In this document: positions 4,129-58,209 of the stretch, one piece after another
Layout: each line of letters opens with the position of its first letter
Numbering within the stretch: position 1 is the stretch's first letter
Virus record (IMG/VR): IMGVR_UViG_3300045971_000344
Location: 1 to 64,000 of that record
Strand: one strand, 5' to 3'
Length of the DNA: 64,000 nt
The notes under the pieces: model-generated
Told to the model about the DNA's origin: nothing
Database searches by the model: none
Seen by the model: only the letters and a program-made list of their open reading frames with translations
Made by a program: the position numbers and the translations under genes

Positions 4129-4276
4129 GTTGGGTTTAATACGATTATCCGCTGAGTTGTCTATTAAGGCACTTCAAATGGGTGCTCCTGTTGAAAGTAT
4201 TGAGCAATACCTTAACTCAATATCTGACAGTCTCTATAAAGTGCGAGAGTTATGCTCCAAAGGTGATAAGACATGA
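4109..4276 (+). CDS. Small hypothetical protein (55 aa)
   Basis: METIINKLG...KGDKT, with GGAG upstream; not in the supplied ORF track. Confidence 0.5.
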   Translation: METIINKLGLIRLSAELSIKALQMGAPVESIEQYLNSISDSLYKVRELCSKGDKT

Positions 4277-5793: not shown

Positions 5794-7161
5794 ATTAGAC
5801 TATTCAGTCCAGAAACAGAGTTTAGAGTAATAGCTTCTATCTGCAATTCTCCTCCTAATTCAGTTACTACTACCTTTCTTTTATCCAGAATTACTACTGA
5901 GCACTTTCATTTTGATCCAGCAAAAGCCGCTTTTAAGCGAATAATGAAGTTGATGCAAACTAGTGGTAATATTCCTGGGTATAGAGAGTTAGAAGCTGAT
6001 CCAATATTGGATGAAGGCTTTAGAGCAGAAATATCTGCGTATGATGATAAAAAGAAAAAGATAAGACAAGAGAAAACCGCTAAGGCGGTATTTGATCTCT
6101 TAGAAAGCTATAGAAAAAAGAGGGTACTGTATAACGTAGCAAAGTCTACAATAGATAAATTAAAAGGCGAAGCTGTAGATGTAGACAGCCTTATACAGGC
6201 AATGGGTGATAATTTAGCTGTTGCAACCTCGGCTGTCTCAACAATTGAACAACTTGTCCACATAGGAGAAGGTAACAACAGCGTTGAGCTCGTTAAAGAG
6301 ATACTAGATGGAGAAGGTTCTCCAACTATTCCAACAGGTTTTAAGACGTTTGATGATAAAAATGGAGGATTCTTTAAGCAGGCAGTTGCGGTATTATCTT
6401 CAAATAGTTCAGGCGGTAAGTCCGTTTGCGCACTTCAGATGGCAATAAATATGTACTGGGCAGGGCAAAGCACTTGCGTACTCTCCTTAGAGATGAGTAA
6501 AGACCAGTACATGGCACGTTTCTTATCTAACATAAGTGGTGTATCTGCCTCAAGAATATTTTTGAAGAAACTTACTGAAGACGAAAAGAATGAAATACGA
6601 GCTGCCTATAAAAAGTTTGTTATCTTCGGAAAGAAAAATAATGTACGATGGACAATACTAGCCCCTGAAACTGGTTTATCACTTGACCAGTTACTTATGA
6701 CTTGTAAGCCCTATAGCTTTGACGTAGTAACAATTGACTATGCTACCTTATTAGAAGAGGCTGATGTAGATAACCAAGCACGAGCTTTGGCCTCAATTAC
6801 ACGCCGTTGTAAAGTATTCTCTCAAGTATCAAAATGTCTAGTTATAGTACTAGCTCAGTTGTCTGATGATGGGTTTATAAAATACAGTAGGGCGATAAAA
6901 GAAAATGCGGACCACGTTTGGACCTGGACTTTTTCCGATACGGAAAGAGAAACTCATAATATAACAATAAAAGTTGATAAAGGTAGAAACCAAATGTGTT
7001 TTCCTTTTGAAGTTACTGAAGATTTCTCAACTATGAGAATTATAGATAATGGACCCGTAAGATCATTCGATGAAGATACTGAAAACGAATTTTCAACAAA
7101 AAAGAAAAAGAAAGAGAAAGAAGAACCTGAAGATGATTATTTAGCGGAGGACGATATCTGA
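5794..7161 (+). CDS. dnaB: DnaB-like replicative helicase (probable ATT start at 5794)
   Basis: IPTGFKTFD, SNSSGGKS (Walker A), LSLEMS, VTIDY, VLAQLS, IKENAD, VDKGRN. The frame is open 50 codons upstream of ATG 5944 to an ATT downstream of GGGGAGGTG. Confidence 0.88.
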   Translation: MRLFSPETEFRVIASICNSPPNSVTTTFLLSRITTEHFHFDPAKAAFKRIMKLMQTSGNIPGYRELEADPILDEGFRAEISAYDDKKKKIRQEKTAKAVFDLLESYRKKRVLYNVAKSTIDKLKGEAVDVDSLIQAMGDNLAVATSAVSTIEQLVHIGEGNNSVELVKEILDGEGSPTIPTGFKTFDDKNGGFFKQAVAVLSSNSSGGKSVCALQMAINMYWAGQSTCVLSLEMSKDQYMARFLSNISGVSASRIFLKKLTEDEKNEIRAAYKKFVIFGKKNNVRWTILAPETGLSLDQLLMTCKPYSFDVVTIDYATLLEEADVDNQARALASITRRCKVFSQVSKCLVIVLAQLSDDGFIKYSRAIKENADHVWTWTFSDTERETHNITIKVDKGRNQMCFPFEVTEDFSTMRIIDNGPVRSFDEDTENEFSTKKKKKEKEEPEDDYLAEDDI

Positions 7162-31927: not shown

Positions 31928-32101
31928 CTACTTTATACCTAAATTTTTACCTGAATTCCATTAAAATTAACCCGAATTCCATGAAAAAACCTCATAAAAT
32001 AACCCATTTCTATGGGTGTTTTATGCGATAAAAACCCCTTAGGGGTCAAAAACCGTAGTATTTTGCATAGGTTACCAAGAAAACGAACCTTTTAGGTAAT
32101 T

Positions 32102-32130
32102 TTGACATTTGGGTAAAAATTTGATAAAAT
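32102..32130 (+). promoter_or_regulatory. sigma70-type promoter
   Basis: TTGACA-17-TAAAAT with TGn extended -10. Confidence 0.8.
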
Positions 32131-32227
32131 AAAATTGAAGGGGAATAGAAAAAGGAATACATCACGAATTTTCGCAGATTTGCGAAATCATTACAAACCC
32201 AAAGAGTTGTACGAAAAGGAGATCATC

Positions 32228-33055
32228 ATGGCACGCACAGCAAAAATTTCGGCAATCGCAGCAGTTGAGACGCTCACATCTAACGCTACATCATCCAAAA
32301 AGGAGAACACCATGAAAACCAACGCTATCGAGATCATCTTCACCCCGGCCAAATCGCTTGTCGCTATCGTAAACCCCGCAACTCCGGCCGTTGTCGTTCC
32401 CGAAGTCGCAGTCGAAGCAGTTGCTCCGAAGCGCACCCGCAAAGCAAGAGTTGTTGCCCCGGTTGTGGTCGCAGTTGTTGAAGAGCCCAAGAAGCGCACT
32501 CGCAAGACAAACAAGATCGCAACTCCGGTTGAGGTCGCTGAAGTCGTGGTAGTCGCTCCGAAGCGTGAGCGCAAAGCAAAAGTCGGCGTTAACTTCGAGA
32601 ACGAACTCGGCATGATCTTCAAACCCGCATCGCAGTTCAAGAAAGCGCTGTCCGCAACTCCGGTAGTCGAGGTCGAGGCAGTTGCTCCGAAACGCACTCG
32701 CAAGTCCTCCAAGATCGCAACTCCGGCAGTCGAGGTTGCAGAAGTGGTTGTTGAAACTCCGAAGCGTGGTCGCAAGGCAAGAGTTGCAGTCGAAGTCGAA
32801 GTCGTAGCAGCTCCGGTATCGGCCAAAGTTATCTCGATGGACGAGCATCGCGCACGCCGCAGCATGAAGGCCCTGGCAGAAGTTTCGGAAAAAATCATCT
32901 CCGCAGATTCCGAAAAGGCAGCAAAAAAGTTCTTCAAGAAGTATGTTGCTGAAGTCGGTATCGAAGATGCAGCACGCAACCTGCGTTACATCCTCCGCAA
33001 GCTGAACTCCGAAAAAGCAACAGAGTTGTTCGCTCAGTACAGCGTTAACCAGTAA
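32228..33055 (+). CDS. Ala/Val/Pro/Lys-rich repeat protein (histone H1-like); second in-frame start at 32312
   Basis: VEAVAPKRTRK-type repeats; AAGGAG before both ATGs. Confidence 0.7.
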   Translation: MARTAKISAIAAVETLTSNATSSKKENTMKTNAIEIIFTPAKSLVAIVNPATPAVVVPEVAVEAVAPKRTRKARVVAPVVVAVVEEPKKRTRKTNKIATPVEVAEVVVVAPKRERKAKVGVNFENELGMIFKPASQFKKALSATPVVEVEAVAPKRTRKSSKIATPAVEVAEVVVETPKRGRKARVAVEVEVVAAPVSAKVISMDEHRARRSMKALAEVSEKIISADSEKAAKKFFKKYVAEVGIEDAARNLRYILRKLNSEKATELFAQYSVNQ

Positions 33056-33166
33056 CAGTTGTTCAACCTCGGCGAGAGGGAATGGTTTTATCTACATTCC
33101 CTCTCGACACTCTTTCATTTTCACTTATCGATCCATGCAGTACAAATTAACTAAAGGAGAATTATC

Positions 33167-34603
33167 ATGGCCAAGGTAAAGAAAATCAAGTGTATGATCT
33201 GTACAGACCCCTTTCAGGCAACAGAGTTGTTGTATAACGAAGCGCAGCACGGCATCAATGTTTGCCCCGAATGCGCCGCTCCGGCTGAGTCACGTGTCCT
33301 CGAAGAAAAGATCGCAGAGTTTATCGCTAAAAAGGGCATGAGCAAAAAGGCCGCCACGCAGAAAGCAAATGAACTGAATCTGGAAAAAGGCGTAGTCGCG
33401 CTCCTCACAGAAATCATCGAGTCGGACGATATGGACGAGAACGAAACTACCCCCGCAACTCTCGATCCTCATGATGACTTCGCCGATGAAGATATCGATC
33501 TGGGCGATGATGATGAAGACGAAACCAAACCCGCAACTCCGGAAGTTAAACCCTCGAAGGTCAATAAAAAAGAAAAGGAGATTTCAACCATGAGTGACAA
33601 CAGCAAACAGGCAATCAAAGATGCACGGACAGAGTTGAACGCAGTTAAGGCCAAGATCGCAGAACTGGAAGCAAAAGCCGCCGCCGGCAAAAAGGTCACC
33701 AAGGCATTGGCGACCGCTCAGGAAGAACTCAGCGCAGCTAAGGCAGCACTGAAAGAGTTGAAGGCCGATTCCAAGACCTCTGCTGCACCCGAAGTTGAAA
33801 CAACAACCCCGAAGGTTCGCAAGCAGAAAGACAGCGCCGCTCCAGCAGTTGAGGCAACCATCCAGGAAACGAATAAAACGACCGCAAAAACTCTTCGCGG
33901 TTACATCAGCGAAGCCAAGAACGACATTGAAACTCTGAAAGCTGAGTTGGAAACCGCCGGTGGTACGGACAAGAAGATCAGCAAGAAGTTGACTCACGAG
34001 CTCCTGCACCTGGAAAACTTGAAGGCGATGCTTAAAGATGTTAAGGGCGCATCTTCAGTAGGCGCACCCGCAACTCCGGCCCCGGTTGTCGACAACAAAG
34101 CGGCCCTGAAAGACGCTCGCGCCAACGTCCGCGAAGCACGCAACGCAGTAAAAGAGTTGAAGGCGCAGGTTGCCGCTGACCCCGACAATAAAAAGCTCAT
34201 CAAGAAACTGGCCGCAGCTATCGAGACCTTCAACGCCTGCAAGAGCACTGCAACAGAGTTGAAACCTCAGAAGGACTCAGCAGCTCCGAAGGCTGAAAAG
34301 GTTCCGCGGGCGCCTAAGGCAGATGCAACCATCGCAGAAACGTTCAGCATCGAACTCGAACTCAGCGGTAAGAAGTTGAACCGCGCAGTTGCCGAAGCGT
34401 TCTTCGCAGTTAAGGAGTCCCTGAAGCACATGAAAATTAAACCGGGTGTATCCGCGGCAGACATTTTCGAGAGCAACGCTACAGAGCAGATCGAAGCATC
34501 AATTTCGGAAATGGTCCTGCGGGCAGTAAAGAAACAACTCTCGGAGCAGGATTTCAATATCGGCCGCATCGTCCGCGCAGAGAAGAAATCCATCGGAGCA
34601 TAA
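33167..34603 (+). CDS. Zinc-finger plus helical-repeat protein; second in-frame start at 33590
   Basis: CMIC...CPEC, acidic linker, three Ala/Lys-rich helical repeats. Confidence 0.7.
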   Translation: MAKVKKIKCMICTDPFQATELLYNEAQHGINVCPECAAPAESRVLEEKIAEFIAKKGMSKKAATQKANELNLEKGVVALLTEIIESDDMDENETTPATLDPHDDFADEDIDLGDDDEDETKPATPEVKPSKVNKKEKEISTMSDNSKQAIKDARTELNAVKAKIAELEAKAAAGKKVTKALATAQEELSAAKAALKELKADSKTSAAPEVETTTPKVRKQKDSAAPAVEATIQETNKTTAKTLRGYISEAKNDIETLKAELETAGGTDKKISKKLTHELLHLENLKAMLKDVKGASSVGAPATPAPVVDNKAALKDARANVREARNAVKELKAQVAADPDNKKLIKKLAAAIETFNACKSTATELKPQKDSAAPKAEKVPRAPKADATIAETFSIELELSGKKLNRAVAEAFFAVKESLKHMKIKPGVSAADIFESNATEQIEASISEMVLRAVKKQLSEQDFNIGRIVRAEKKSIGA

Positions 34604-34732
34604 AATCATTCTGATCTGAATTGTGGGGGAGAGCGTTTTGGTGCTCTCCCCATTCAGAGTTTTTGGCTGTGGTAAGCGCCCTTTACAGGGCCTTTATCAG
34701 ATTCAAAAAACCTGAGAAATGAGGATTACACC

Positions 34733-35974
34733 ATGGGAAGAGGTTCCGTACTTAGAAACAGAACGCATCTGTCTGATGACACTGCAGTAGTCGAGGGATT
34801 TAAAAACTCCGCAGGGAAGGTTGTTATTCGGCTCACAGTAGAAAGCGATAAAGTAAATCCAGTAAAAGGTGAAAAGGACTTGCAGGTCATCGCGCTGTCA
34901 ATTGATGAAATGAAATACCTTTTGGAGTTTTTGGGGGATGCAGTAAAATCCGCAGAAAAACTTTTTGCATAAAAAAGGAGTATCAGATGACTAAAAAAGT
35001 AAATGCACCACCCGTCATTTTGTTAGTCGAAGAAGACCGCAAGAAAAAGATTCAAGATGCCTTTGCGGTTCTCCAGGATGTTGTTAAAAACCTGTCCCCA
35101 ACGCTGTCAACTCTGGTAAACCTTGAAAAGTCTGAATACAAGGAAGACGAGCAGTGTTTGGCGTTTGGGTCCTCTCCAGAGTTTAATTTGTACTACTACG
35201 TTAAGCCCGAGGGCTGTAAAAAACGGGTTTACCCAGAGTTTGAGTACTCTATCACCGTATTTGTGTCCACGTACTCTTATGAAGACGGACCATCTTGCGA
35301 TGAAGTCGATCTTGTAAATGCGGCTAACCCGTATGCACTGGTGAGGAGTTTCCTTATCGCCCTCGCAACAGAAGAAATTAACAATGCAGTTACAGCAAGC
35401 GCAGAATACGCTGAACATCTCGAAAATAAAAGAATGGAGGAACTTACTCATGGCGCCTAAGATTACGGAATTCAACAGACAGAACTGCAGGGAACTGAGT
35501 ACAGAGTTGTTGGGGTTCCTCACAAAGTTCGCTGAACAGCATGGTCTCACCGTTGTGGACGAAGGTGGCAAGTTTAACGCTACTACGTACACGCCCAAGT
35601 TCACCTTTCAGGTCCCAACCGAAAATTTGGGGGCAAAAAAGAACGTTGTGGATAAGACGTTCAACCCCAAAAACCCCGCAAACGGTACGATAACTGAGGC
35701 TCAAGCAAGATCAATAAACCCCGAGTACGTTGACTTCGCAGTGGGTAAAAAGGGCAGCAACAGGTCCTCATTTTATCTGTACGACAAGGCCCTTAAAAAG
35801 GGAATGACCGTTTTGGTGCATGATGGCTACGGTAAAGGAAAAGTGACCTTCAAAGTGGCCCGAATATCCTCAGTCGGGATGGATATGAGCGGTGAGAAAA
35901 ATTCAAAGGTAAGAGTGACCGATGGTGCGTACAGCTGGCGCATAGATTCCTGCTACATTATCCCTATCAAATAG
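34733..35974 (+). other. Three hypothetical CDS (34733..34972, 34987..35460, 35450..35974)
   Basis: ORFs each with GGAG-type RBS. Confidence 0.65.
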
Positions 35975-35986
35975 GGACCGAAAACC

Positions 35987-36048
35987 AACGGTTGTCAAAT
36001 TCCAATAATTTAAATGAATTTGACAACCGTTTCGCTGTATGTTATAAT
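35987..36048 (+). promoter_or_regulatory. sigma70 consensus promoter with a 15-bp inverted repeat over the -35
   Basis: TTGACA 36020-36025, 17 nt, TATAAT 36043-36048; AACGGTTGTCAAATT/AATTTGACAACCGTT. Confidence 0.85.
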
Positions 36049-52206: not shown

Positions 52207-53154
52207 ATGGCAAAAGAAACTAAAGAAGAAAAAGCAGCACGTTTGGCCAAAGAAGCAAAACTCGCAGAGCGCGCCCGTAAGAAGGCTGAAAAAGAAGCCG
52301 CAGCTAAACAGGCCGCCAAAGAAGCAGAGAAGGCTCGCAAGAAGGCTGAGAAGGAAGCAGCTTCTAAAAAGCCTGCGAAAGCTGAAAAGCCTGCTAAGTC
52401 AGAAAAGGCACCCAAAGCAGGTAAAGGTAAGGCAGCGAAAGCAGAAAACAATGCAACTGTTCTGGTCCAGGCACGAACCGTGCGTGAACTCACAGGAACA
52501 ATCGCTTCAATCACCGGCGAAGAGATTCAGCTTATTCACAAAATGCCGAGGTCTTCAAAAGCTGTTCTCCGTACAATCGCTATCGCCGATGTACTGTTCT
52601 TTAAAGGTGAAGAAGGTTCCTACGGTGAAGTTTCTTTCTACGGTAACGAAGTTCTGGTCGATGATAAAGGTATTAGCGGCAAAGACAAGACTACGGGGTT
52701 TGTTACTGTCACTAACAGAAACGGCGAAGTTATCGCCATCAACCCTGATCAGCCAGAAGGTTCTGATTCAGAAATCCTCGTTCTGGTAGACGAAGAGATT
52801 GCAAAGCGTCCTAAGAAAGAAAAGGGCGAAAAAGAAGAGAAATCCGGTAAGGGCCGTAAGGCAAAAGACGAGGACGAAGATGAGGACGAGGACGAGGATG
52901 ATGAAAAACCTAAGCGTGGCCGTAAGCCTGGTAAGCCCGTAGAGGATGATGAGGATGATGAGGATGAAGAAGATGAAGATGATGATGATGAAGATGAGGA
53001 TGAAGATGAGGATGAAGATGATGATGATGAAGATGATGATGATGATGATGAAGACGAAGATGATGAGGATGATGATGAAGATGAGGATGAAGATGAGGAT
53101 GAAGATGAGGATGAAGATGAGGATGAAGATGAAGATGAAGATGATGACGACTAG
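52207..53154 (+). CDS. Protein with Lys/Ala-rich N-terminus, beta-rich core and ~70-residue Asp/Glu tail
   Basis: Translation; GAT/GAG/GAA repeat tract about 52870-53151. Confidence 0.7.
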   Translation: MAKETKEEKAARLAKEAKLAERARKKAEKEAAAKQAAKEAEKARKKAEKEAASKKPAKAEKPAKSEKAPKAGKGKAAKAENNATVLVQARTVRELTGTIASITGEEIQLIHKMPRSSKAVLRTIAIADVLFFKGEEGSYGEVSFYGNEVLVDDKGISGKDKTTGFVTVTNRNGEVIAINPDQPEGSDSEILVLVDEEIAKRPKKEKGEKEEKSGKGRKAKDEDEDEDEDEDDEKPKRGRKPGKPVEDDEDDEDEEDEDDDDEDEDEDEDEDDDDEDDDDDDEDEDDEDDDEDEDEDEDEDEDEDEDEDEDEDDDD

Positions 53155-53209
53155 TCATTAGCTTAATCTGAAGACGAGGATGATGACGAAGAGGAATTTC
53201 ATTTAGCCT

Positions 53210-53490
53210 GAACTTACCAGGTAGTATCTGAGTTATAGTAAGTCAGCTCTTTATCAGAGTTGTCGAGAAGCTCAGGTGCTGTATAGAGACGAAATAGATA
53301 GGACAGTGAAATGTACCACAGTGTTTAAGCCCTTAGCGGCAGTCCCGACCGGTATCCGGTCATTGCCATCCCCCGAATTGAACAGCGTAAGATAGCTGTT
53401 AGTTCTTCGCCCACAGATGTTATGCCATGTGGGCGCCGTCGGCGCGTAGGGAGTCGCTTGCTTTTACACACATCGCCCGGTACAACTAGC
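53210..53490 (+). ncRNA. Structured RNA with collinear similarity to the 16S rRNA head (about nt 976-1240)
   Basis: GAACTTACCAGGT, TCAGAG, CAGGTGCTG, GTGAAATGT, TTAAGCCC, TATCC..TTGCCA, GATG, TACACAC..TACAA in rRNA order and near-rRNA spacing; many hairpins; no ORF. Confidence 0.55.
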
Positions 53491-53494
53491 CGAC

Positions 53495-53593
53495 AAGTTA
53501 TAATTGTCCGTTTAGGATAGTGCGGAGACTATGAAGCTGTGGCGCCAGCAGCGGTGGAGTCACCCTTGAAATACGCACCGGAAATTATAATTT
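53495..53593 (+). ncRNA. 23S rRNA L1-stalk (H76-H78) mimic
   Basis: Ungapped match to recalled E. coli 23S 2113-2178 with compensatory pairs; 15-bp closing stem 53495-53510/53579-53593. Confidence 0.85.
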
Positions 53594-53629
53594 CTATTTC
53601 GTTTTCTAAAATCTTAGGAGTGATGAGCC

Positions 53630-54175
53630 ATGAGAACAAAAACCTTAAAAGTAATAATACGAAATGCCATAGCTATGGCTTCAAGTCCTTTTGAATGTGT
53701 AAAGTATATCGCTCGTGAGTTGGAAGAAAATAATGTAGAGTACTGCGTTATCGGGGGAGTAGCACTTTCAACTTATAACTACGAAAGAAATACTAATGAC
53801 GTAGATCTATTGGTATCTAAAGAAGGCTTTAGTATAATAAAAAATAACTTTATTGGTCGTGGGTATACGCTTAGACCAGGTTCAACAAAAAACCTTAATT
53901 ATTTAGCTCCTTCTGGTAAAGTACCTATTGATATACTTGTAGAGGGAGACCGAGAGGGAACAATTGTTCTACCCAAACCAAAAGGTATACGAGAAAAACG
54001 TGGTGGTATATGGTACTTAACCTTACCCAAACTCATTGAGTTTAAGTTAAACGCTAATAGACCGGAGGACAGACAAGACGTACTGAAATTAATAAAGTTA
54101 AATGACTTGGGTCCCGAATTGGTTCAGGCAATTGAAGGCCCTGCTAGTATAAAATACTTAGAGTTGTTGGGTTGA
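53630..54175 (+). CDS. Minimal nucleotidyltransferase (Pol-beta superfamily)
   Basis: YCVIGGVAL...RNTNDVDLLV...IDIL...LIEFKL..RPEDRQDV. Confidence 0.8.
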   Translation: MRTKTLKVIIRNAIAMASSPFECVKYIARELEENNVEYCVIGGVALSTYNYERNTNDVDLLVSKEGFSIIKNNFIGRGYTLRPGSTKNLNYLAPSGKVPIDILVEGDREGTIVLPKPKGIREKRGGIWYLTLPKLIEFKLNANRPEDRQDVLKLIKLNDLGPELVQAIEGPASIKYLELLG

Positions 54176-54185
54176 TAACGCTAAT

Positions 54186-54272
54186 GGGCGAGTAGTCGAA
54201 TGGCATAGACAAAGGATTTAAAATCCTTGGCCCGTAAGGGAGTGATGGGTTCAAGTCCCTCCTCGCCCACCA
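54186..54272 (+). tRNA. tRNA-Leu (anticodon UAA), CCA encoded
   Basis: GGGCGAG/CTCGCCC acceptor stem, AAGGA-TTTAAAA-TCCTT anticodon arm, long variable arm, GTTCAAGT T-loop, ACCA end. Confidence 0.95.
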
Positions 54273-54295
54273 TAAAATAAATGTCCGTCAAGAAT

Positions 54296-54324
54296 TTGAC
54301 ATTTAATATCAGCTATGTTATAAT
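54296..54324 (+). promoter_or_regulatory. sigma70 consensus promoter
   Basis: TTGACA-17-TATAAT; leader similar to that of the 42661 promoter. Confidence 0.88.
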
Positions 54325-54384
54325 GAATTATGGGGAATACTCCGGAGGAACTCACATTAAAATTAATGAAAGGGGGTGAATTGA

Positions 54385-54879
54385 ATGAAAATGTTAAAAG
54401 TTATAATCGAAGAAATAAGAGTTGCAGTTAATTCCTCCGACCTCTCCGATGAAGAAAAGTACCAAAGAGTGCTATCTTCGGCTATGCCAATTTCAGCCGC
54501 AAAATTTAAGATTATTGCTCAGTCAGAAGCTTTGATCTTGCACGTAGCAAAAAGAAAGTTATTTCCGCAAGACATTCATAATTGGGAAAAAGATATTGCA
54601 ACAAAAATGCTGGAAAGAATTTCCAGAATAAAATCAGATTTAGATAATTCTGATATAAAGAACTTATTGCTGGAAGGTAAAAATGAAGACCACGAAATGT
54701 TGGATTATTTAGAAGATGCAGTTGAAGCAGTTACAAAGAAGAATAAAAAAGCAAAGCCGATTCAATTTACAGAACAGCAGTTGTTACAAACCTGGACAAC
54801 CTTTGTAGAACTATTTATACAAAATTATGAACAAGGATCACATTATACGGAACACCAGGTCAGAGCCTGGTTACAATAA
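54385..54879 (+). CDS. Hypothetical protein, paralog of 43642..44172
   Basis: Direct sequence comparison. Confidence 0.6.
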   Translation: MKMLKVIIEEIRVAVNSSDLSDEEKYQRVLSSAMPISAAKFKIIAQSEALILHVAKRKLFPQDIHNWEKDIATKMLERISRIKSDLDNSDIKNLLLEGKNEDHEMLDYLEDAVEAVTKKNKKAKPIQFTEQQLLQTWTTFVELFIQNYEQGSHYTEHQVRAWLQ

Positions 54880-54939
54880 TTAAATAACCCGCAAACCACC
54901 CCAACGGCGCTCTAAAAGGTCAACGGAAAGGATCGCATC

Positions 54940-55656
54940 ATGAAAACAAAGTCAATATCGTACCAGAAAGCAATCTCGCTTTTAAAAGCCCACCTTGAGA
55001 CTTCCCTTCAGCATATAACGTCACTCAATCCAGAGTGTACGTTGCTCAACGCCACAAAATCCTATCTTAGCAATAAAAATGAAATCCTACTTAGTAGTGG
55101 AGCAAAGCTCTATTACAACCCCGAGTTTCCTGAACCTTGGTTTATCGGAGGGTATTCAGGTGACGGATCCGATGTAGACTGCTATTTCGATAGGTCTATA
55201 ATGAACCGGTTAATAAAATTCCATAGCATCTGTCCCTCATGCAACCCCGTAGTTAAACAGAAAATAAAGCTCCGAAAACTCCTTAAAGATTTTTTGGAGT
55301 CAGATATCAGATGCACCTGGATCAGAACAGGTAAAGTATCAGTGTATATTCGTAAGAGTTGGAGGTCGTTTAATGGAGAGCAGTCCTCTGTTAATAAAGG
55401 GCTTATCTCTAATTGCTTTGATATTGCAAATATACAAATCCACCCGTCCCTTAGAAACCTGGGCATCTTTAAGTCCTTCATGCAGATCGTAGATGAAGAG
55501 GTAAGGTCTACGGAAACCGGAGTGTATATCCTTATCGAGAACATTGAAAACAAGTTCCTAAAGAATTGGTGCATAAATAATAACTGGAAAAAAGTATCAT
55601 CCGAGTATGATGAAGTAAGTTACTACAAACCCATGGAAAGGAGAAGCGTATTATGA
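54940..55656 (+). CDS. Protein with C-terminal GNAT-like acetyltransferase domain
   Basis: FDIANIQIHPSLRNLGIFK (motif A-like), ILIENIENKFLKNW. Confidence 0.6.
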   Translation: MKTKSISYQKAISLLKAHLETSLQHITSLNPECTLLNATKSYLSNKNEILLSSGAKLYYNPEFPEPWFIGGYSGDGSDVDCYFDRSIMNRLIKFHSICPSCNPVVKQKIKLRKLLKDFLESDIRCTWIRTGKVSVYIRKSWRSFNGEQSSVNKGLISNCFDIANIQIHPSLRNLGIFKSFMQIVDEEVRSTETGVYILIENIENKFLKNWCINNNWKKVSSEYDEVSYYKPMERRSVL

Positions 55657-58209
55657 TTGAGTCGTATATTAAGTCCAACACTGTAGAACGAAAGACCTGT
55701 CTTGGTGAGGAGGCTAGTGATTGGGGACAAATGTCTTTGGAGACAGTCCGGGCGTTAGTCTCAGTAGGTATTCCCCTTGGATTCAATTTTTCTTTCAGCA
55801 AAATCTATGAAGGTCCAAATGATGACTATGAACCGGTTGTCATAACAGCATTGGGTGACAACCTTTTTGTTTATCCAGAATATCCGGGCGATGACAGAGA
55901 AGAGGCGATGGCAGGATTCTGGGGCGCAGTAGATGCCTACAAAAACAATCAAAAACAGATAATATCAGATATCTGTGCTGATGTGGTTGACGAGTGGAAC
56001 AATACTCGAAAAGGGAACAGGCGTAATAACCGGGTCGGTCTAATTAGTCTGGCCGGAAAAGCAAAACATACCCGAATAATTTCTGATTGGCTGGCAACAT
56101 TTACCTCTGGTATGACTATAAGTGAGGCATGTGCAGTAATTTCAACTAATCCTGCAATTGTTAAGAAACTAGAGGATGTACGCGATACTGTTAGACTGAA
56201 TATCTGTGAAAAGAGTTTATTTAATCTTGAAGGAGAGAGACGTAGTACAACAGGAGATAGGAGGAAAAAATGACTGGAACTTTATCCGCGCTAGGACAAA
56301 ATGATTCTCTTATAATTCCAGAATTGACGGAATTAGAAAAAGAATTGGACTTAGACTTTGTAAAGATCAAGCGTAGGTGTAGCGATGCAATGTGGAAAAC
56401 TGATGATACTACTATTATCCTATTTATAGCAAAGTTGTTAAGGGTAAAATTACAATAACCTGGAGGAAGCATCTATGAAGACGTCGCATGAGCAACATAA
56501 AGGGATGAAGATCGCATTACTTGATGGACGTTCAGGTAAGGTTGTAAAGGTATTGCCAGACCGTTATAAAATAAAGATCGCAGATGAGCAATTTTGGATA
56601 AGTATAAAAGATATAAAATGGACAAAGACAAACAAGCTATTTCAGACAGAAACGGACTACACGGGTAAACTTTGTGTACTTCAAAGTAGCGGAGTTGCAA
56701 ATGGAACAATAGTTAAGATCCAAAAGAAGGAATCAGACGGGTGGAGGTTTCATTATTCCACAGGTTGTGGGGGAGTAACCCACGGGTGTAATCTAAAGCC
56801 GATAGAAAAAGGCAATGGCTCTATTCGGATGACAGCAGAAGGTCAGTGTATCTGTGACTGTTGTGGAGCAACGTTTGAGCAAGAACAGATGCAGTTGTAC
56901 TTCATCCGAAATTCCGATGGACCTAAAAACGGTGTTGTCTGTAATATTTGTAATAAATTTATTCATCCGTTTTTGGTATTCAATTCTTCATACAACCTCG
57001 AATTGGATGTTGTTCTACCCACGACTCCAGGTTCGCACCCTATCCGGACATTTGATGTAAAGAACTTAAAAGAACTGAATGACCGGGTTAGGACCAAATT
57101 AGAGACCCTGTCAAAGGACTTGGATTTGGTAATAATAGAGTCGCATAAACAGGTCCGTCCTACTGCAATGGAGTACAAAGTTCTGGTTAAGTTACATTCT
57201 GATGTTGAGCCAAAATTAAACTCTCAAGGTAAGACCACTAAGAAAGGAAAATGATATGGGACAACAAAGGTCACAGAATAAATCCGATAAAGTGGTTTGG
57301 GTTTGTTGTATCTGCGGGGCCAACCCAGACACCTTTTCTTGTAAGCACAAAAATTTAGGCCCATCTGGAATGGTTAGTGAGATCGATTACAAGAAGGTCC
57401 AAAAAATGATTGAGGACCAAAAAATTAGAACAGAAAATCAACTAAAAATATTAAGAAAATAATAGGGGAATCTTACTTATGAAAGTAGCATACTGTCCAA
57501 AATGTAAAGACCTGTTTAAACTGATTTTTGATGTCCGTTCATGCCGTTGCGGAGAGTCAAGTGGTGTCCTAATGCAGGATAAAATGTCCGTCCAGATAAA
57601 CGGACCTACAAAGGTAATTGGTATTGAGGACCGAAGTTTCTTTGAGGCAGTAAATAAGCAACCTAAAAGCGGTAGCGGGAAGGACTTTAAGGCCTTTGTT
57701 TTGCCCATTGAAAACAAAAGCGTTAGGGCAATTATTCCAAATCCAGCGCCGGCCCAAGCAGTTCCAGCTTCAACTCCAATTATAGAAGATTTGATAAGTG
57801 TAGATATCGAGGTTAAAAAAGAAGATAATGAGTTAAAAGGAGAATGACCATGAATACTAATAAGGACCCTCAAGCGAGAGCACACAACCTGGAGAAGGTT
57901 AGAGAAATGATGACGGTTCCTCCAAATGAAGATGTTACTGTTACTCAAAAGGTTCATCGGATAATGATTACCCGATTGAGCTTACAAGGGTTGCAACCTA
58001 AAATAGATGTATTGAACAGTACGCCCTTGTGCACTGGGTGGATGGTTTTTCTTAACAAGGCCGGCACATTGGCTCATATTATGCACGCTGAAGATGTTGT
58101 GGACGGGTCTTACATACGGATGAAAATTCCGAGCGGAGTGGCGGGTGCGCATGAGGAATTCATGCGTCGCTGGTTTTATAACCGTATGGTTCATCGCTAC
58201 GTTATTTAA
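55653..58209 (+). other. Run of hypothetical CDS (55653..56273, 56270..56458, 56475..57254, 57256..57462, 57479..57847, 57844..58209)
   Basis: Coupled ORFs with RBS. Confidence 0.6.

Follow-up and report, generated by a model that had tools for sequence, protein, structure and literature searches.

A free-standing copy of the ribosomal L1 stalk beside a tRNA gene in a giant pond phage, and its recurrence as an orphan element in large phages

The stretch of DNA analyzed here (the window) comprises positions 1 to 64,000 of the IMG/VR virus record IMGVR_UViG_3300045971_000344, and the features of interest lie on its + strand between two clear boundaries. Upstream is a gene (52207-53154) for a protein that is lysine-rich and then extremely acidic, with D/E repeats and a tandem GATGAA array (52945-53147); it gave only a weak hit to phrog_22271, a protein search found no homologs, and we do not consider it part of the element. 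Downstream is a consensus sigma70 promoter (54296-54324; TTGACA-17-TATAAT with a TG extension) that matches at 12 of 12 positions, is one of three such promoters in the window (36020, 42661 and 54296), and starts the next transcription unit (gene 54385-54879). Between them lie a 475-nt gap (53155-53629), an open reading frame of 181 aa (53630-54175) preceded by the Shine-Dalgarno sequence AGGAG (53616-53620), and a tRNA gene (54186-54272). An initial annotation of this region from sequence alone had described a contiguous, co-oriented trio of an rRNA-mimicking RNA, a minimal nucleotidyltransferase (NTase) and a tRNA-Leu bounded by the acidic gene and the promoter, and this observation is confirmed. 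The region is also not an assembly chimera, since two sequencing runs give a 115,914-nt contig that crosses 53156-56300 with no mismatches and at the same depth as the flanks.

The tRNA was called by ARAGORN and by Rfam (48.7 bits) as a tRNA-Leu with anticodon UAA, and it has the long variable arm of class II and a genomically encoded CCA end. UUA and UUG together make up 44% of Leu codons in the long ORFs of the window, and we regard it as an ordinary phage tRNA that reads the commonest Leu codons of the phage.

The 181-residue protein carries the pol-beta motif GG...DVD, but its Pfam hits to NTP_transf_5 (the best), DUF6036 and DUF2204 are weak and fall below the curated cut-offs, and there is no hit to the AbiEii (DUF1814) model. 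A profile built from 12 homologs, in contrast, hits MenT1 (PDB 8an4) at E=1.6e-7, and an AF2 model (pLDDT 89.7) has MenT1/MenAT1 as its best Foldseek matches, with the same bilobed minimal NTase fold (TM about 0.6) at about 20% identity. The key residues are G42-G43, T55, D57, D59, D101, K139 and D150; G42-G43 and D57-x-D59 (motif I) are invariant or near-invariant among homologs, and the four catalytic residues of MenT1, T39/D41/K137/D152 (PMC10435456), align to T55/D57/K139/D150, the last two being the motif III Lys and motif IV Asp. The protein is therefore placed, by profile and predicted fold, in the MenT/AbiEii group of toxins that modify tRNA 3' ends, as the initial annotation had suggested, although such an activity is inferred here. 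The gene is solitary: no neighboring gene and no antitoxin candidate is conserved across 9 phage-like and 10 bacterial loci with homologs, and PADLOC returned nothing for the six local proteins.

The gap has no ORF longer than 51 aa in any frame, is GC-rich (0.50-0.54 against about 0.39 for the genome), and folds better relative to shuffled sequence on the + strand (z=-3.5) than on the - strand (z=-2.0). Within it, 53510-53579 matches E. coli 23S rRNA 2110-2178 at 80% identity, so that the term L1-like used in the initial annotation is literally correct: the last ~100 nt of the gap (53495-53595) imitate the L1 stalk. A covariance model of L1 stalks scores 53497-53595 at 86.5 bits (E about 1e-22), and this is the only copy in the window. 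The head corresponds to the top of H76, H77 and H78, and it is set on a phage-specific, A/U-rich closing stem of about 15 bp (about 53495-53510 paired with 53579-53593). Relative to the bacterial stalk (E. coli 2093-2196), the H76 pairs GGUGG/CCACC are replaced by GUGCG/CGCAC, a triple compensatory change. Both T-loop pentanucleotides (UAGGA and UGAAA) are intact, and the junction sequences are present as CGGAG (for GGGAG) and GGAG. The element is not part of an rRNA gene, as no other rRNA similarity was found in the window. Directly after the closing stem is a U-rich tract (53594-53612; CUAUUUCGUUUUCU...) that could be a terminator or 3'-end signal, but the evidence is weak: a terminator scan did not call it, although a similar U-tract follows the mimic in L033, another of the mimic-bearing loci.

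Only this 3' portion of the gap is shown to imitate rRNA. The preceding ~290 nt (53206-53494) are noncoding, GC-rich (0.46-0.54) and lineage-specific, with several perfect hairpins in the minimum free energy (MFE) fold (z=-2.2 for 53283-53494), and they may form one transcript with the mimic. They showed no similarity to E. coli 16S, 23S or 5S rRNA or to about 1 Mb of other loci retrieved for comparison. A resemblance by eye to the L11 site of 23S rRNA (H43-44; CUUAGCGGCAG, GCGUAAGAUAGC) was not supported by MAFFT alignment or by an nhmmer profile of 33 phage H43 elements. Rfam assigned no family to the gap at gathering thresholds or at E<=10, but this is not decisive because the same search mode missed a known LSU piece in L027, another mimic-bearing locus.

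Orphan L1-stalk elements recur in large phage contigs. A sequence pattern for the L1 stalk gave 24 hits in viral contigs and that for the H43/L11 site gave 44, whereas control patterns from two other conserved rRNA sites gave 0 (sarcin-ricin loop) and 3 (16S 530 loop). The pattern hits at loci L020, L022, L028 and L041 were not confirmed by the covariance model, L029 and L049 proved to be contaminant records with a real 23S rRNA, and Paenibacillus phage Pd_22F, considered as a cultured example, was rejected because its record holds a full 23S plus 5S. Of the 18 distinct mimic sequences, 17 have no other rRNA similarity, and the exception, L036, has one further 23S piece, an H43-like element. 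The equivalent elements at L021, L027 and L042 pass Rfam LSU gathering on model positions about 2125-2216. Covariation in the family is strong: of all cells in the 16 pairs, 97.7% are paired, 13 of the 16 pairs show compensatory changes, and the covariation score is 0.777, against 0.218 when shuffled and at most 0.18 when slid. The T-loop pentanucleotides and the GGGAG/GGAG junction nucleotides are invariant apart from the CGGAG form in the window, while the positions equivalent to 2112 (U in the window) and 2169-2170 vary. In MFE folds of 16 of the mimics, phage-specific flanks pair to form a closing stem in most. The H76 variant of the window was absent from 185,579 species genomes, which argues for evolution inside phages rather than a fresh capture.

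The mimics also tend to lie near tRNA genes. Seven of the 18 distinct sequences have a same-strand tRNA within 36-2122 nt, but 10 have no tRNA in the DNA retrieved and one has only an opposite-strand tRNA, so the link is a tendency and not a rule. The H43/L11-site orphans, which are commoner still, lie inside phage tRNA arrays, with tRNAs in 36 of 42 loci and often 10-500 nt away. Some phages carry both pieces (L036, L025 and, weakly, L045).

The trio itself, however, is not a conserved module. Co-occurrence elsewhere had been named beforehand as a test of the idea, and none was found in either direction. No L1 mimic is present at any of the 9 phage-like (L002-L010) or 10 bacterial (L092-L101) NTase homolog loci examined, of which only L007 has a tRNA, 3.6 kb away. 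Conversely, none of about 70 loci carrying an L1 or H43 mimic encodes an NTase homolog at E<=1, and no protein family at all is shared between mimic neighborhoods. Searches for close relatives of this 295-kb phage, in which the arrangement might have been kept, were also negative: blastn and tblastn against 50,697 phage records found none, scans of viral contigs with the NTase, the acidic protein and the downstream 164-aa protein found only the contig itself or low-complexity hits, and an L1 pattern specific to the window found none in metagenome or genome contigs.

Taken together, the analysis establishes that 53495-53595 is a free-standing structural copy of the head of the L1 stalk on a phage-made stem, that it belongs to a recurrent set of elements evolving under strong selection for the L1-stalk fold and tending to lie close to phage tRNA genes on the same strand, and that the neighboring NTase gene moves independently, with no comparative evidence that makes it a partner of the RNA. 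What the RNA does, including its transcription, any binding to uL1 or tRNA and any processing, is inferred from sequence alone, and no RNA sequencing run holding the sequence was listed. We suspect that it is most likely a trans-acting decoy L1 stalk that binds uL1 and/or tRNA elbows, but we hold this view only tentatively. In this model, the RNA would be transcribed from an upstream promoter together with the NTase message and the tRNA, and the extended stem, the U-tract and tRNA processing would give it defined ends. Because isolated L1-stalk fragments fold and bind uL1 on their own, the phage RNA would capture free host uL1 to form an off-ribosome particle whose interdigitated T-loops can dock tRNA elbows. 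Its job would then be tRNA-centered, perhaps to hold, shield or chaperone tRNAs or to compete with E-site and elbow-recognizing factors during infection, rather than to serve the NTase. The L1 stalk is one of three known tRNA-elbow binders that use interdigitated T-loops (PMC4919913), which is consistent with such a role; it shares this elbow-docking motif with T-box Stem I and the RNase P S-domain. On the other hand, G2112 in the ribosome forms the elbow-stacking pair with A2169, and its variability among phage copies alongside an invariant junction fits uL1 binding better than elbow stacking. The mimic also ends 20 nt before the NTase ribosome-binding site, which would suit a cis-regulatory role, and the 5' 290 nt are not accounted for by this model.

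A broader version of this view, which is doubtful but not excluded, is that large phages encode a previously unrecognized class of trans-acting RNAs copied from the two rRNA domains that grip the tRNA elbow at the entrance (H43/L11 stalk base) and exit (L1 stalk) of the ribosome. Made from tRNA operons and released by tRNA processing, they would form off-ribosome particles with captured uL1/uL11 that bind tRNAs, either to protect them from elbow-reading defense nucleases or to steer tRNA and stringent-response traffic, and in this phage the MenT-like NTase might exploit that platform.

Alternatively, the element may serve only to titrate free uL1, with the H43 elements titrating uL11, and thereby rewire host rplKA autoregulation, ribosome assembly or L11-dependent stringent signaling; proximity to tRNAs would then merely reflect co-expression and processing in stable-RNA operons. 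The invariant H77/H78 junction and the variable 2112 and 2169-2170 positions favor this reading, the two orphan pieces found are the binding sites of two proteins of one operon, and the Microcystis jumbo phage PhiMa05 encodes uL1 and uL11 proteins (PMC13157829), so phages do meddle with exactly these parts, although there it is the proteins that are encoded and within our 64-kb window it is the RNA. However, sequestering the repressor uL1 should raise L11/L1 synthesis, with no obvious benefit to a phage, and titration does not explain why the elements sit so tightly inside tRNA arrays, unless only for processing. We consider it possible but less likely than the tRNA-centered view.

It is unlikely that the mimic is a uL1-responsive leader that represses translation of the NTase in cis, as the E. 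coli L11-operon leader does for its own operon. In favor of this idea, the mimic ends about 20 nt upstream of the AGGAG and 35 nt from the ATG, MenT-type NTases are toxic and need tight control (PMC10435456), and no conserved protein antitoxin is found next to the NTase family. But in other phages the mimic is followed by a tRNA (36 nt away in L021/L025) or by several hundred nt of noncoding DNA and not by a CDS, and NTase homologs elsewhere have short, ordinary upstream spacers (1-165 nt) without any mimic. In addition, the uL1 sites in the E. coli L11-operon leader and in archaeal L1 mRNAs mimic only the small H77/H78 junction, occur in ribosomal-protein operons and act in cis, whereas the phage element copies the whole stalk head including the tRNA-contacting T-loops, and in the window the downstream gene encodes an NTase and not a ribosomal protein.

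The interpretation offered by the initial annotation, that the RNA clamp presents tRNAs to the NTase in the manner of an RNase P- or T-box-like ruler or that the three elements jointly counter translation-shutdown immunity, is only partly supported and, as a module, appears equally unlikely. The L1-stalk copy, the NTase assignment and the tRNA all held up, all three elements touch tRNA biology, and the association of the RNA with tRNAs is supported by recurrent synteny. A physical hand-off of tRNA from the RNA to the NTase cannot be excluded for this one phage, but nothing supports it. A T-box is not indicated, as no T-box or RNase P family was found by Rfam at E<=10 in 53100-53700 (moderately strong evidence only, given the limits of that search mode) and no specifier or antiterminator is recognizable; the resemblance to these elbow binders is through the ribosomal version, by homology and not by convergence. 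Nor is this a type III toxin-antitoxin locus, as 53155-53630 contains no tandem repeats and the downstream protein is an NTase rather than an endoribonuclease. Finally, although the element is 80% identical to real 23S rRNA and some public phage records (L029 and Pd_22F) do contain host rRNA, non-functional debris or an assembly artifact is very unlikely given that the boundaries fall precisely at one autonomous domain in 18 independent sequences, compensatory changes keep every helix, most examined copies have phage-specific closing stems, the variant in the window is absent from all species genomes searched, other conserved rRNA sites are nearly absent from viral contigs, and the assembly is uniform and error-free.

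We found no description of such elements in the literature searched. Imitation of rRNA by RNA is known only from short regulatory sites in ribosomal-protein messages, whereas here whole, autonomously folding ribosomal domains are kept under selection in virus genomes, next to the tRNA genes of the virus. A partial analogy is provided by the stable non-tRNA RNAs of the phage T4 tRNA cluster (species 1 and 2, RNA C/D), which are small, of unknown function, and co-located and co-processed with phage tRNAs, but the L1 and H43 queries did not hit T4 in the phage collection. The finding answers a published prediction that elbow-binding T-loop modules might be found in viral noncoding RNAs (PMC4919913), and because the H43-type element is present in cultured jumbo phages (Cronobacter phage GAP32, at 289,501-289,795, Pectobacterium phage CBB, Pseudomonas phage pf16 and others), the idea is directly testable at the bench. 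The MenT-like NTase is itself of interest as a possible host-shutoff or tRNA-editing enzyme carried by a phage. If the orphan domains bind uL1/uL11 or tRNA elbows, they would represent a new way for phages to interfere with, or borrow from, the host translation apparatus, and would give a function to part of the unexplained noncoding RNA in phage tRNA regions.

The window is the first 64 kb of a 294,944-bp IMG/VR contig from a pond metagenome. Nearly all of its genes lie on the + strand, and they include phage-type UvsX-like and SbcC-like genes. A nucleotide search of 50,697 phage records detected no DNA relatives. Three perfect (12/12) sigma70 promoters of the form TTGACA-17-TATAAT lie on the + strand of the window at 36020, 42661 and 54296, so the phage apparently uses host sigma70 for part of its programme. 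A block at 32000-36000 has a GC content of 0.47-0.49 in a roughly 0.38 genome, with long ORFs on both strands and a near-consensus sigma70 promoter at 32102, and is possibly foreign DNA or further structured RNA. About 4 kb upstream of the locus, a 523-aa ORF at 47385-48956 matches a PHROG transposase family (1e-29), which may mark a variable region.

The arrangement described in the initial annotation, an rRNA-mimic RNA, a minimal nucleotidyltransferase (NTase) and tRNA-Leu lying together, is confirmed. ARAGORN and Rfam agree on a tRNA-Leu(UAA) at 54186-54272, and ten bases upstream of it ends a 181-aa ORF (53630-54175) with a good Shine-Dalgarno sequence. Upstream of that lies a 475-nt stretch with no ORF in any frame, whose GC content is 0.50-0.54 in a roughly 0.39 genome and which folds better than shuffled sequence on the + strand (z=-3.5) than on the - strand (z=-2.0). 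The unit is bracketed by an acidic-protein gene and by the perfect promoter at 54296-54324, and two independent runs assemble the stretch without mismatches and at even depth. At the upstream boundary, the acidic ORF stops at TAG (53152), after which the same frame reads SLA, TAA and then SEDEDDDEEEFHLA before a TGA at 53208-53210. Public contigs break at 52938-53156, and this short region could be a relic of a longer tail, readthrough, or a collapse of the GATGAA repeat array.

The RNA does imitate rRNA, but only in its last 100 nt. The first clue was accidental: short, high-depth contigs of other pond organisms matched 53513-53575 at about 82%. A blastn search of E. coli genomes then placed 53510-53579 on 23S rRNA, at 7 places per genome, and the matching position, 2110-2178, is the L1 stalk. 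The alignment keeps UAGGAUAG, GGAG, GAAG, GGAG and UUGAAAUAC, whereas the H76 pairs GGUGG/CCACC are replaced by GUGCG/CGCAC, which amounts to three compensated changes. Below them, a phage-specific stem of about 15 bp closes the domain. A covariance model that we built scores the element at 86.5 bits and finds no other copy in the window. The 5′ 290 nt (53206-53494) form several clean predicted hairpins but match no rRNA, none of about 1 Mb of fetched loci and no Rfam family. The Rfam result is weak evidence, however, because a search in E-value mode missed L1-stalk pieces both in the window (53100-53700) and in another mimic-bearing contig, L027 (4700-6100), even though the L027 piece passes the LSU gathering score in gathering mode.

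The mimic is one of a family. Two degenerate patterns of the L1 stalk found 26 viral contigs, of which one (L029) is a real 23S and another (L024) is a 6.5-kb tobamovirus contig that is probably an assembly chimera. The latter has IRES and UPD pseudoknot hits in Rfam but, oddly, ends with 135 nt (6298-6430) that are 80% identical to bacterial 23S 2068-2200 (L1 stalk; 82.7 bits with the covariance model), where the tRNA-like 3′ end should be. Complete host 23S (and 5S) rRNA genes are present in public "phage" records, namely L029 and Paenibacillus phage Pd_22F (MZ092003, 82190-85116 region), and are a trap when looking for rRNA mimics. Four further loci found by one or other pattern (L020, L022, L028 and L041) fail the covariance model. 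What remains is 18 distinct sequences, mostly on contigs of 28-295 kb, in which whole-rRNA blastn and Rfam find at most LSU positions about 2103-2284 and no other rRNA, with the single exception of an H43-like piece in the mimic-bearing contig L036. Similarity between lineages stops about 20 nt outside the domain, and in MFE folds of 16 of them the flanks form lineage-specific closing stems in most. On the 19-sequence model alignment, 97.7% of cells pair and 13 of 16 pairs show compensatory changes, giving a covariation score of 0.777, as compared with 0.218 in shuffles (0 of 500 reach it) and at most 0.18 when partners are slid. The H76 variant of the window occurs in none of 185,579 species genomes and in no JGI metagenome contig. 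As a control for contamination, equally conserved patterns from the sarcin-ricin loop and the 16S 530 loop hit 0 and 3 viral contigs, respectively.

No protein family is shared between mimic neighbourhoods, but tRNA genes are. A same-strand tRNA lies within 36-2122 nt of 7 of the 18 distinct mimics (window, 591 nt; L021/L025, 36; L033/34, 513; L040, 981; L036, 1565; L027, 1609; and L045, 2122), and one more mimic has an opposite-strand tRNA. We estimate that fewer than about a tenth of positions in such genomes should lie that close to a tRNA, so this is an enrichment and not a rule. Self-cleaving ribozymes lie within 1 kb of the mimic in two loci (L039:7481-7549(-) and L046:6168-6238(-)), with a pistol ribozyme about 1 kb upstream of one mimic and an HDV-like ribozyme about 0.8 kb downstream of the other, which hints at ribozyme processing of these noncoding regions.

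The extra piece in L036 (972-1032) is a copy of 23S 1059-1088, which is H43 of the L11 stalk base (L11 site / GTPase-associated centre). A pattern for it hit 44 viral contigs, none of which has other rRNA, and the element (E. coli about 1052-1088) is 91-100% identical to E. coli, and 94% or more in 41 of 42 loci (examined as L050-L091), over 30-37 nt, with some copies continuing into an H44-like hairpin. Of these 42 loci, 36 have tRNAs, almost always on the same strand; most elements lie inside same-strand tRNA arrays and several start 10-15 nt after a tRNA. In four of the large phage contigs (L054, L067, L075 and L088), tRNAs with anticodon CUA (amber-suppressor type, called "Pyl" by ARAGORN) lie 0.5-1.5 kb from H43-like elements. 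No Rfam family overlaps the elements. They are also found in cultured jumbo phages, namely Cronobacter phage GAP32 (NC_019401, 289521-289557; positions 2501-2537 of the fetched locus L115), CBB, Serratia BF, Erwinia pEa_SNUABM phages, pf16 and Aeromonas 4_4572, where they lie in unannotated intergenic DNA. Both kinds of element are carried by L025 (H43 copy at 4213-4248(-)) and, weakly, by L045, but a profile search found no H43 element in the window.

For the NTase, only 11 homologs surfaced among 5.8 billion proteins. Their profile matches MenT1 of M. tuberculosis (8an4, E=1.6e-7), and the AF2 model (pLDDT 89.7) is closest to MenT1/MenAT1, then to TM1012, ANT(2'')-Ia and LnuA. The catalytic residues T39, D41, K137 and D152 of MenT1, an enzyme that adds CMP to tRNA 3′ ends (PMC10435456), align with invariant T55, D57, K139 and D150. 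The suggestion in the initial annotation that the protein belongs to a superfamily including tRNA 3′-end modifying toxins was therefore apt. The homolog loci, which are nine phage-like contigs and ten Planctomycetota, Acidobacteriota and other MAGs, have varied neighbours, short upstream spacers and no L1 mimic, and the single tRNA among them lies 3.6 kb away in the phage-like locus L007. Conversely, an hmmsearch with the NTase profile finds nothing in about 70 mimic-bearing loci. No neighbouring antitoxin is conserved, and there is no PADLOC hit.

The interpretation in the initial annotation is partly supported: every part was correctly identified and the RNA-tRNA link recurs, but the comparative evidence does not make the NTase a partner. 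The well-supported unit is the L1-stalk mimic, with a tendency to reside in tRNA transcription units. Our analysis establishes the identity, conserved fold and recurrence of this element, whereas binding of uL1 or of tRNA by the phage RNA, and any activity of the NTase on tRNA, are inferred. The L1-stalk rRNA fragment folds and binds uL1 on its own, and its interdigitated T-loops are one of three known tRNA-elbow docks (PMC4919913). The most likely mechanism, which we offer tentatively, is therefore a trans-acting decoy stalk that captures uL1 and/or tRNA elbows. Both a tRNA holder and an r-protein sponge are compatible with the data: the invariant junction nucleotides and the variable 2112/2169-2170 positions lean slightly to protein binding, while the tight embedding in tRNA arrays leans to tRNA. 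A cis role on NTase translation is possible at this locus, since the mimic ends 20 nt from the RBS, but it is unlikely and is not general among the other copies. The trio itself is equally doubtful as a functional unit, being a juxtaposition in one phage and not a conserved module. Finally, given the covariation, the closing stems and the control patterns, the L1-stalk mimics are selected, free-standing RNA domains, not debris.

Full-text literature searches found no report of phage-encoded L1-stalk or H43 copies, although absence from the literature searched is not proof of novelty. The nearest items are phage-encoded uL1/uL11 proteins (PMC13157829) and a large screen of viral structured RNAs in which no rRNA prediction overlapped a candidate. 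The finding is of interest because it is unexpected, recurrent and testable. If H43 with uL11 contacts the elbow of incoming A/T-state tRNA, the two orphan domains carried by these phages are the two elbow grips of the ribosome, and they are also the binding sites of the two rplKA proteins.
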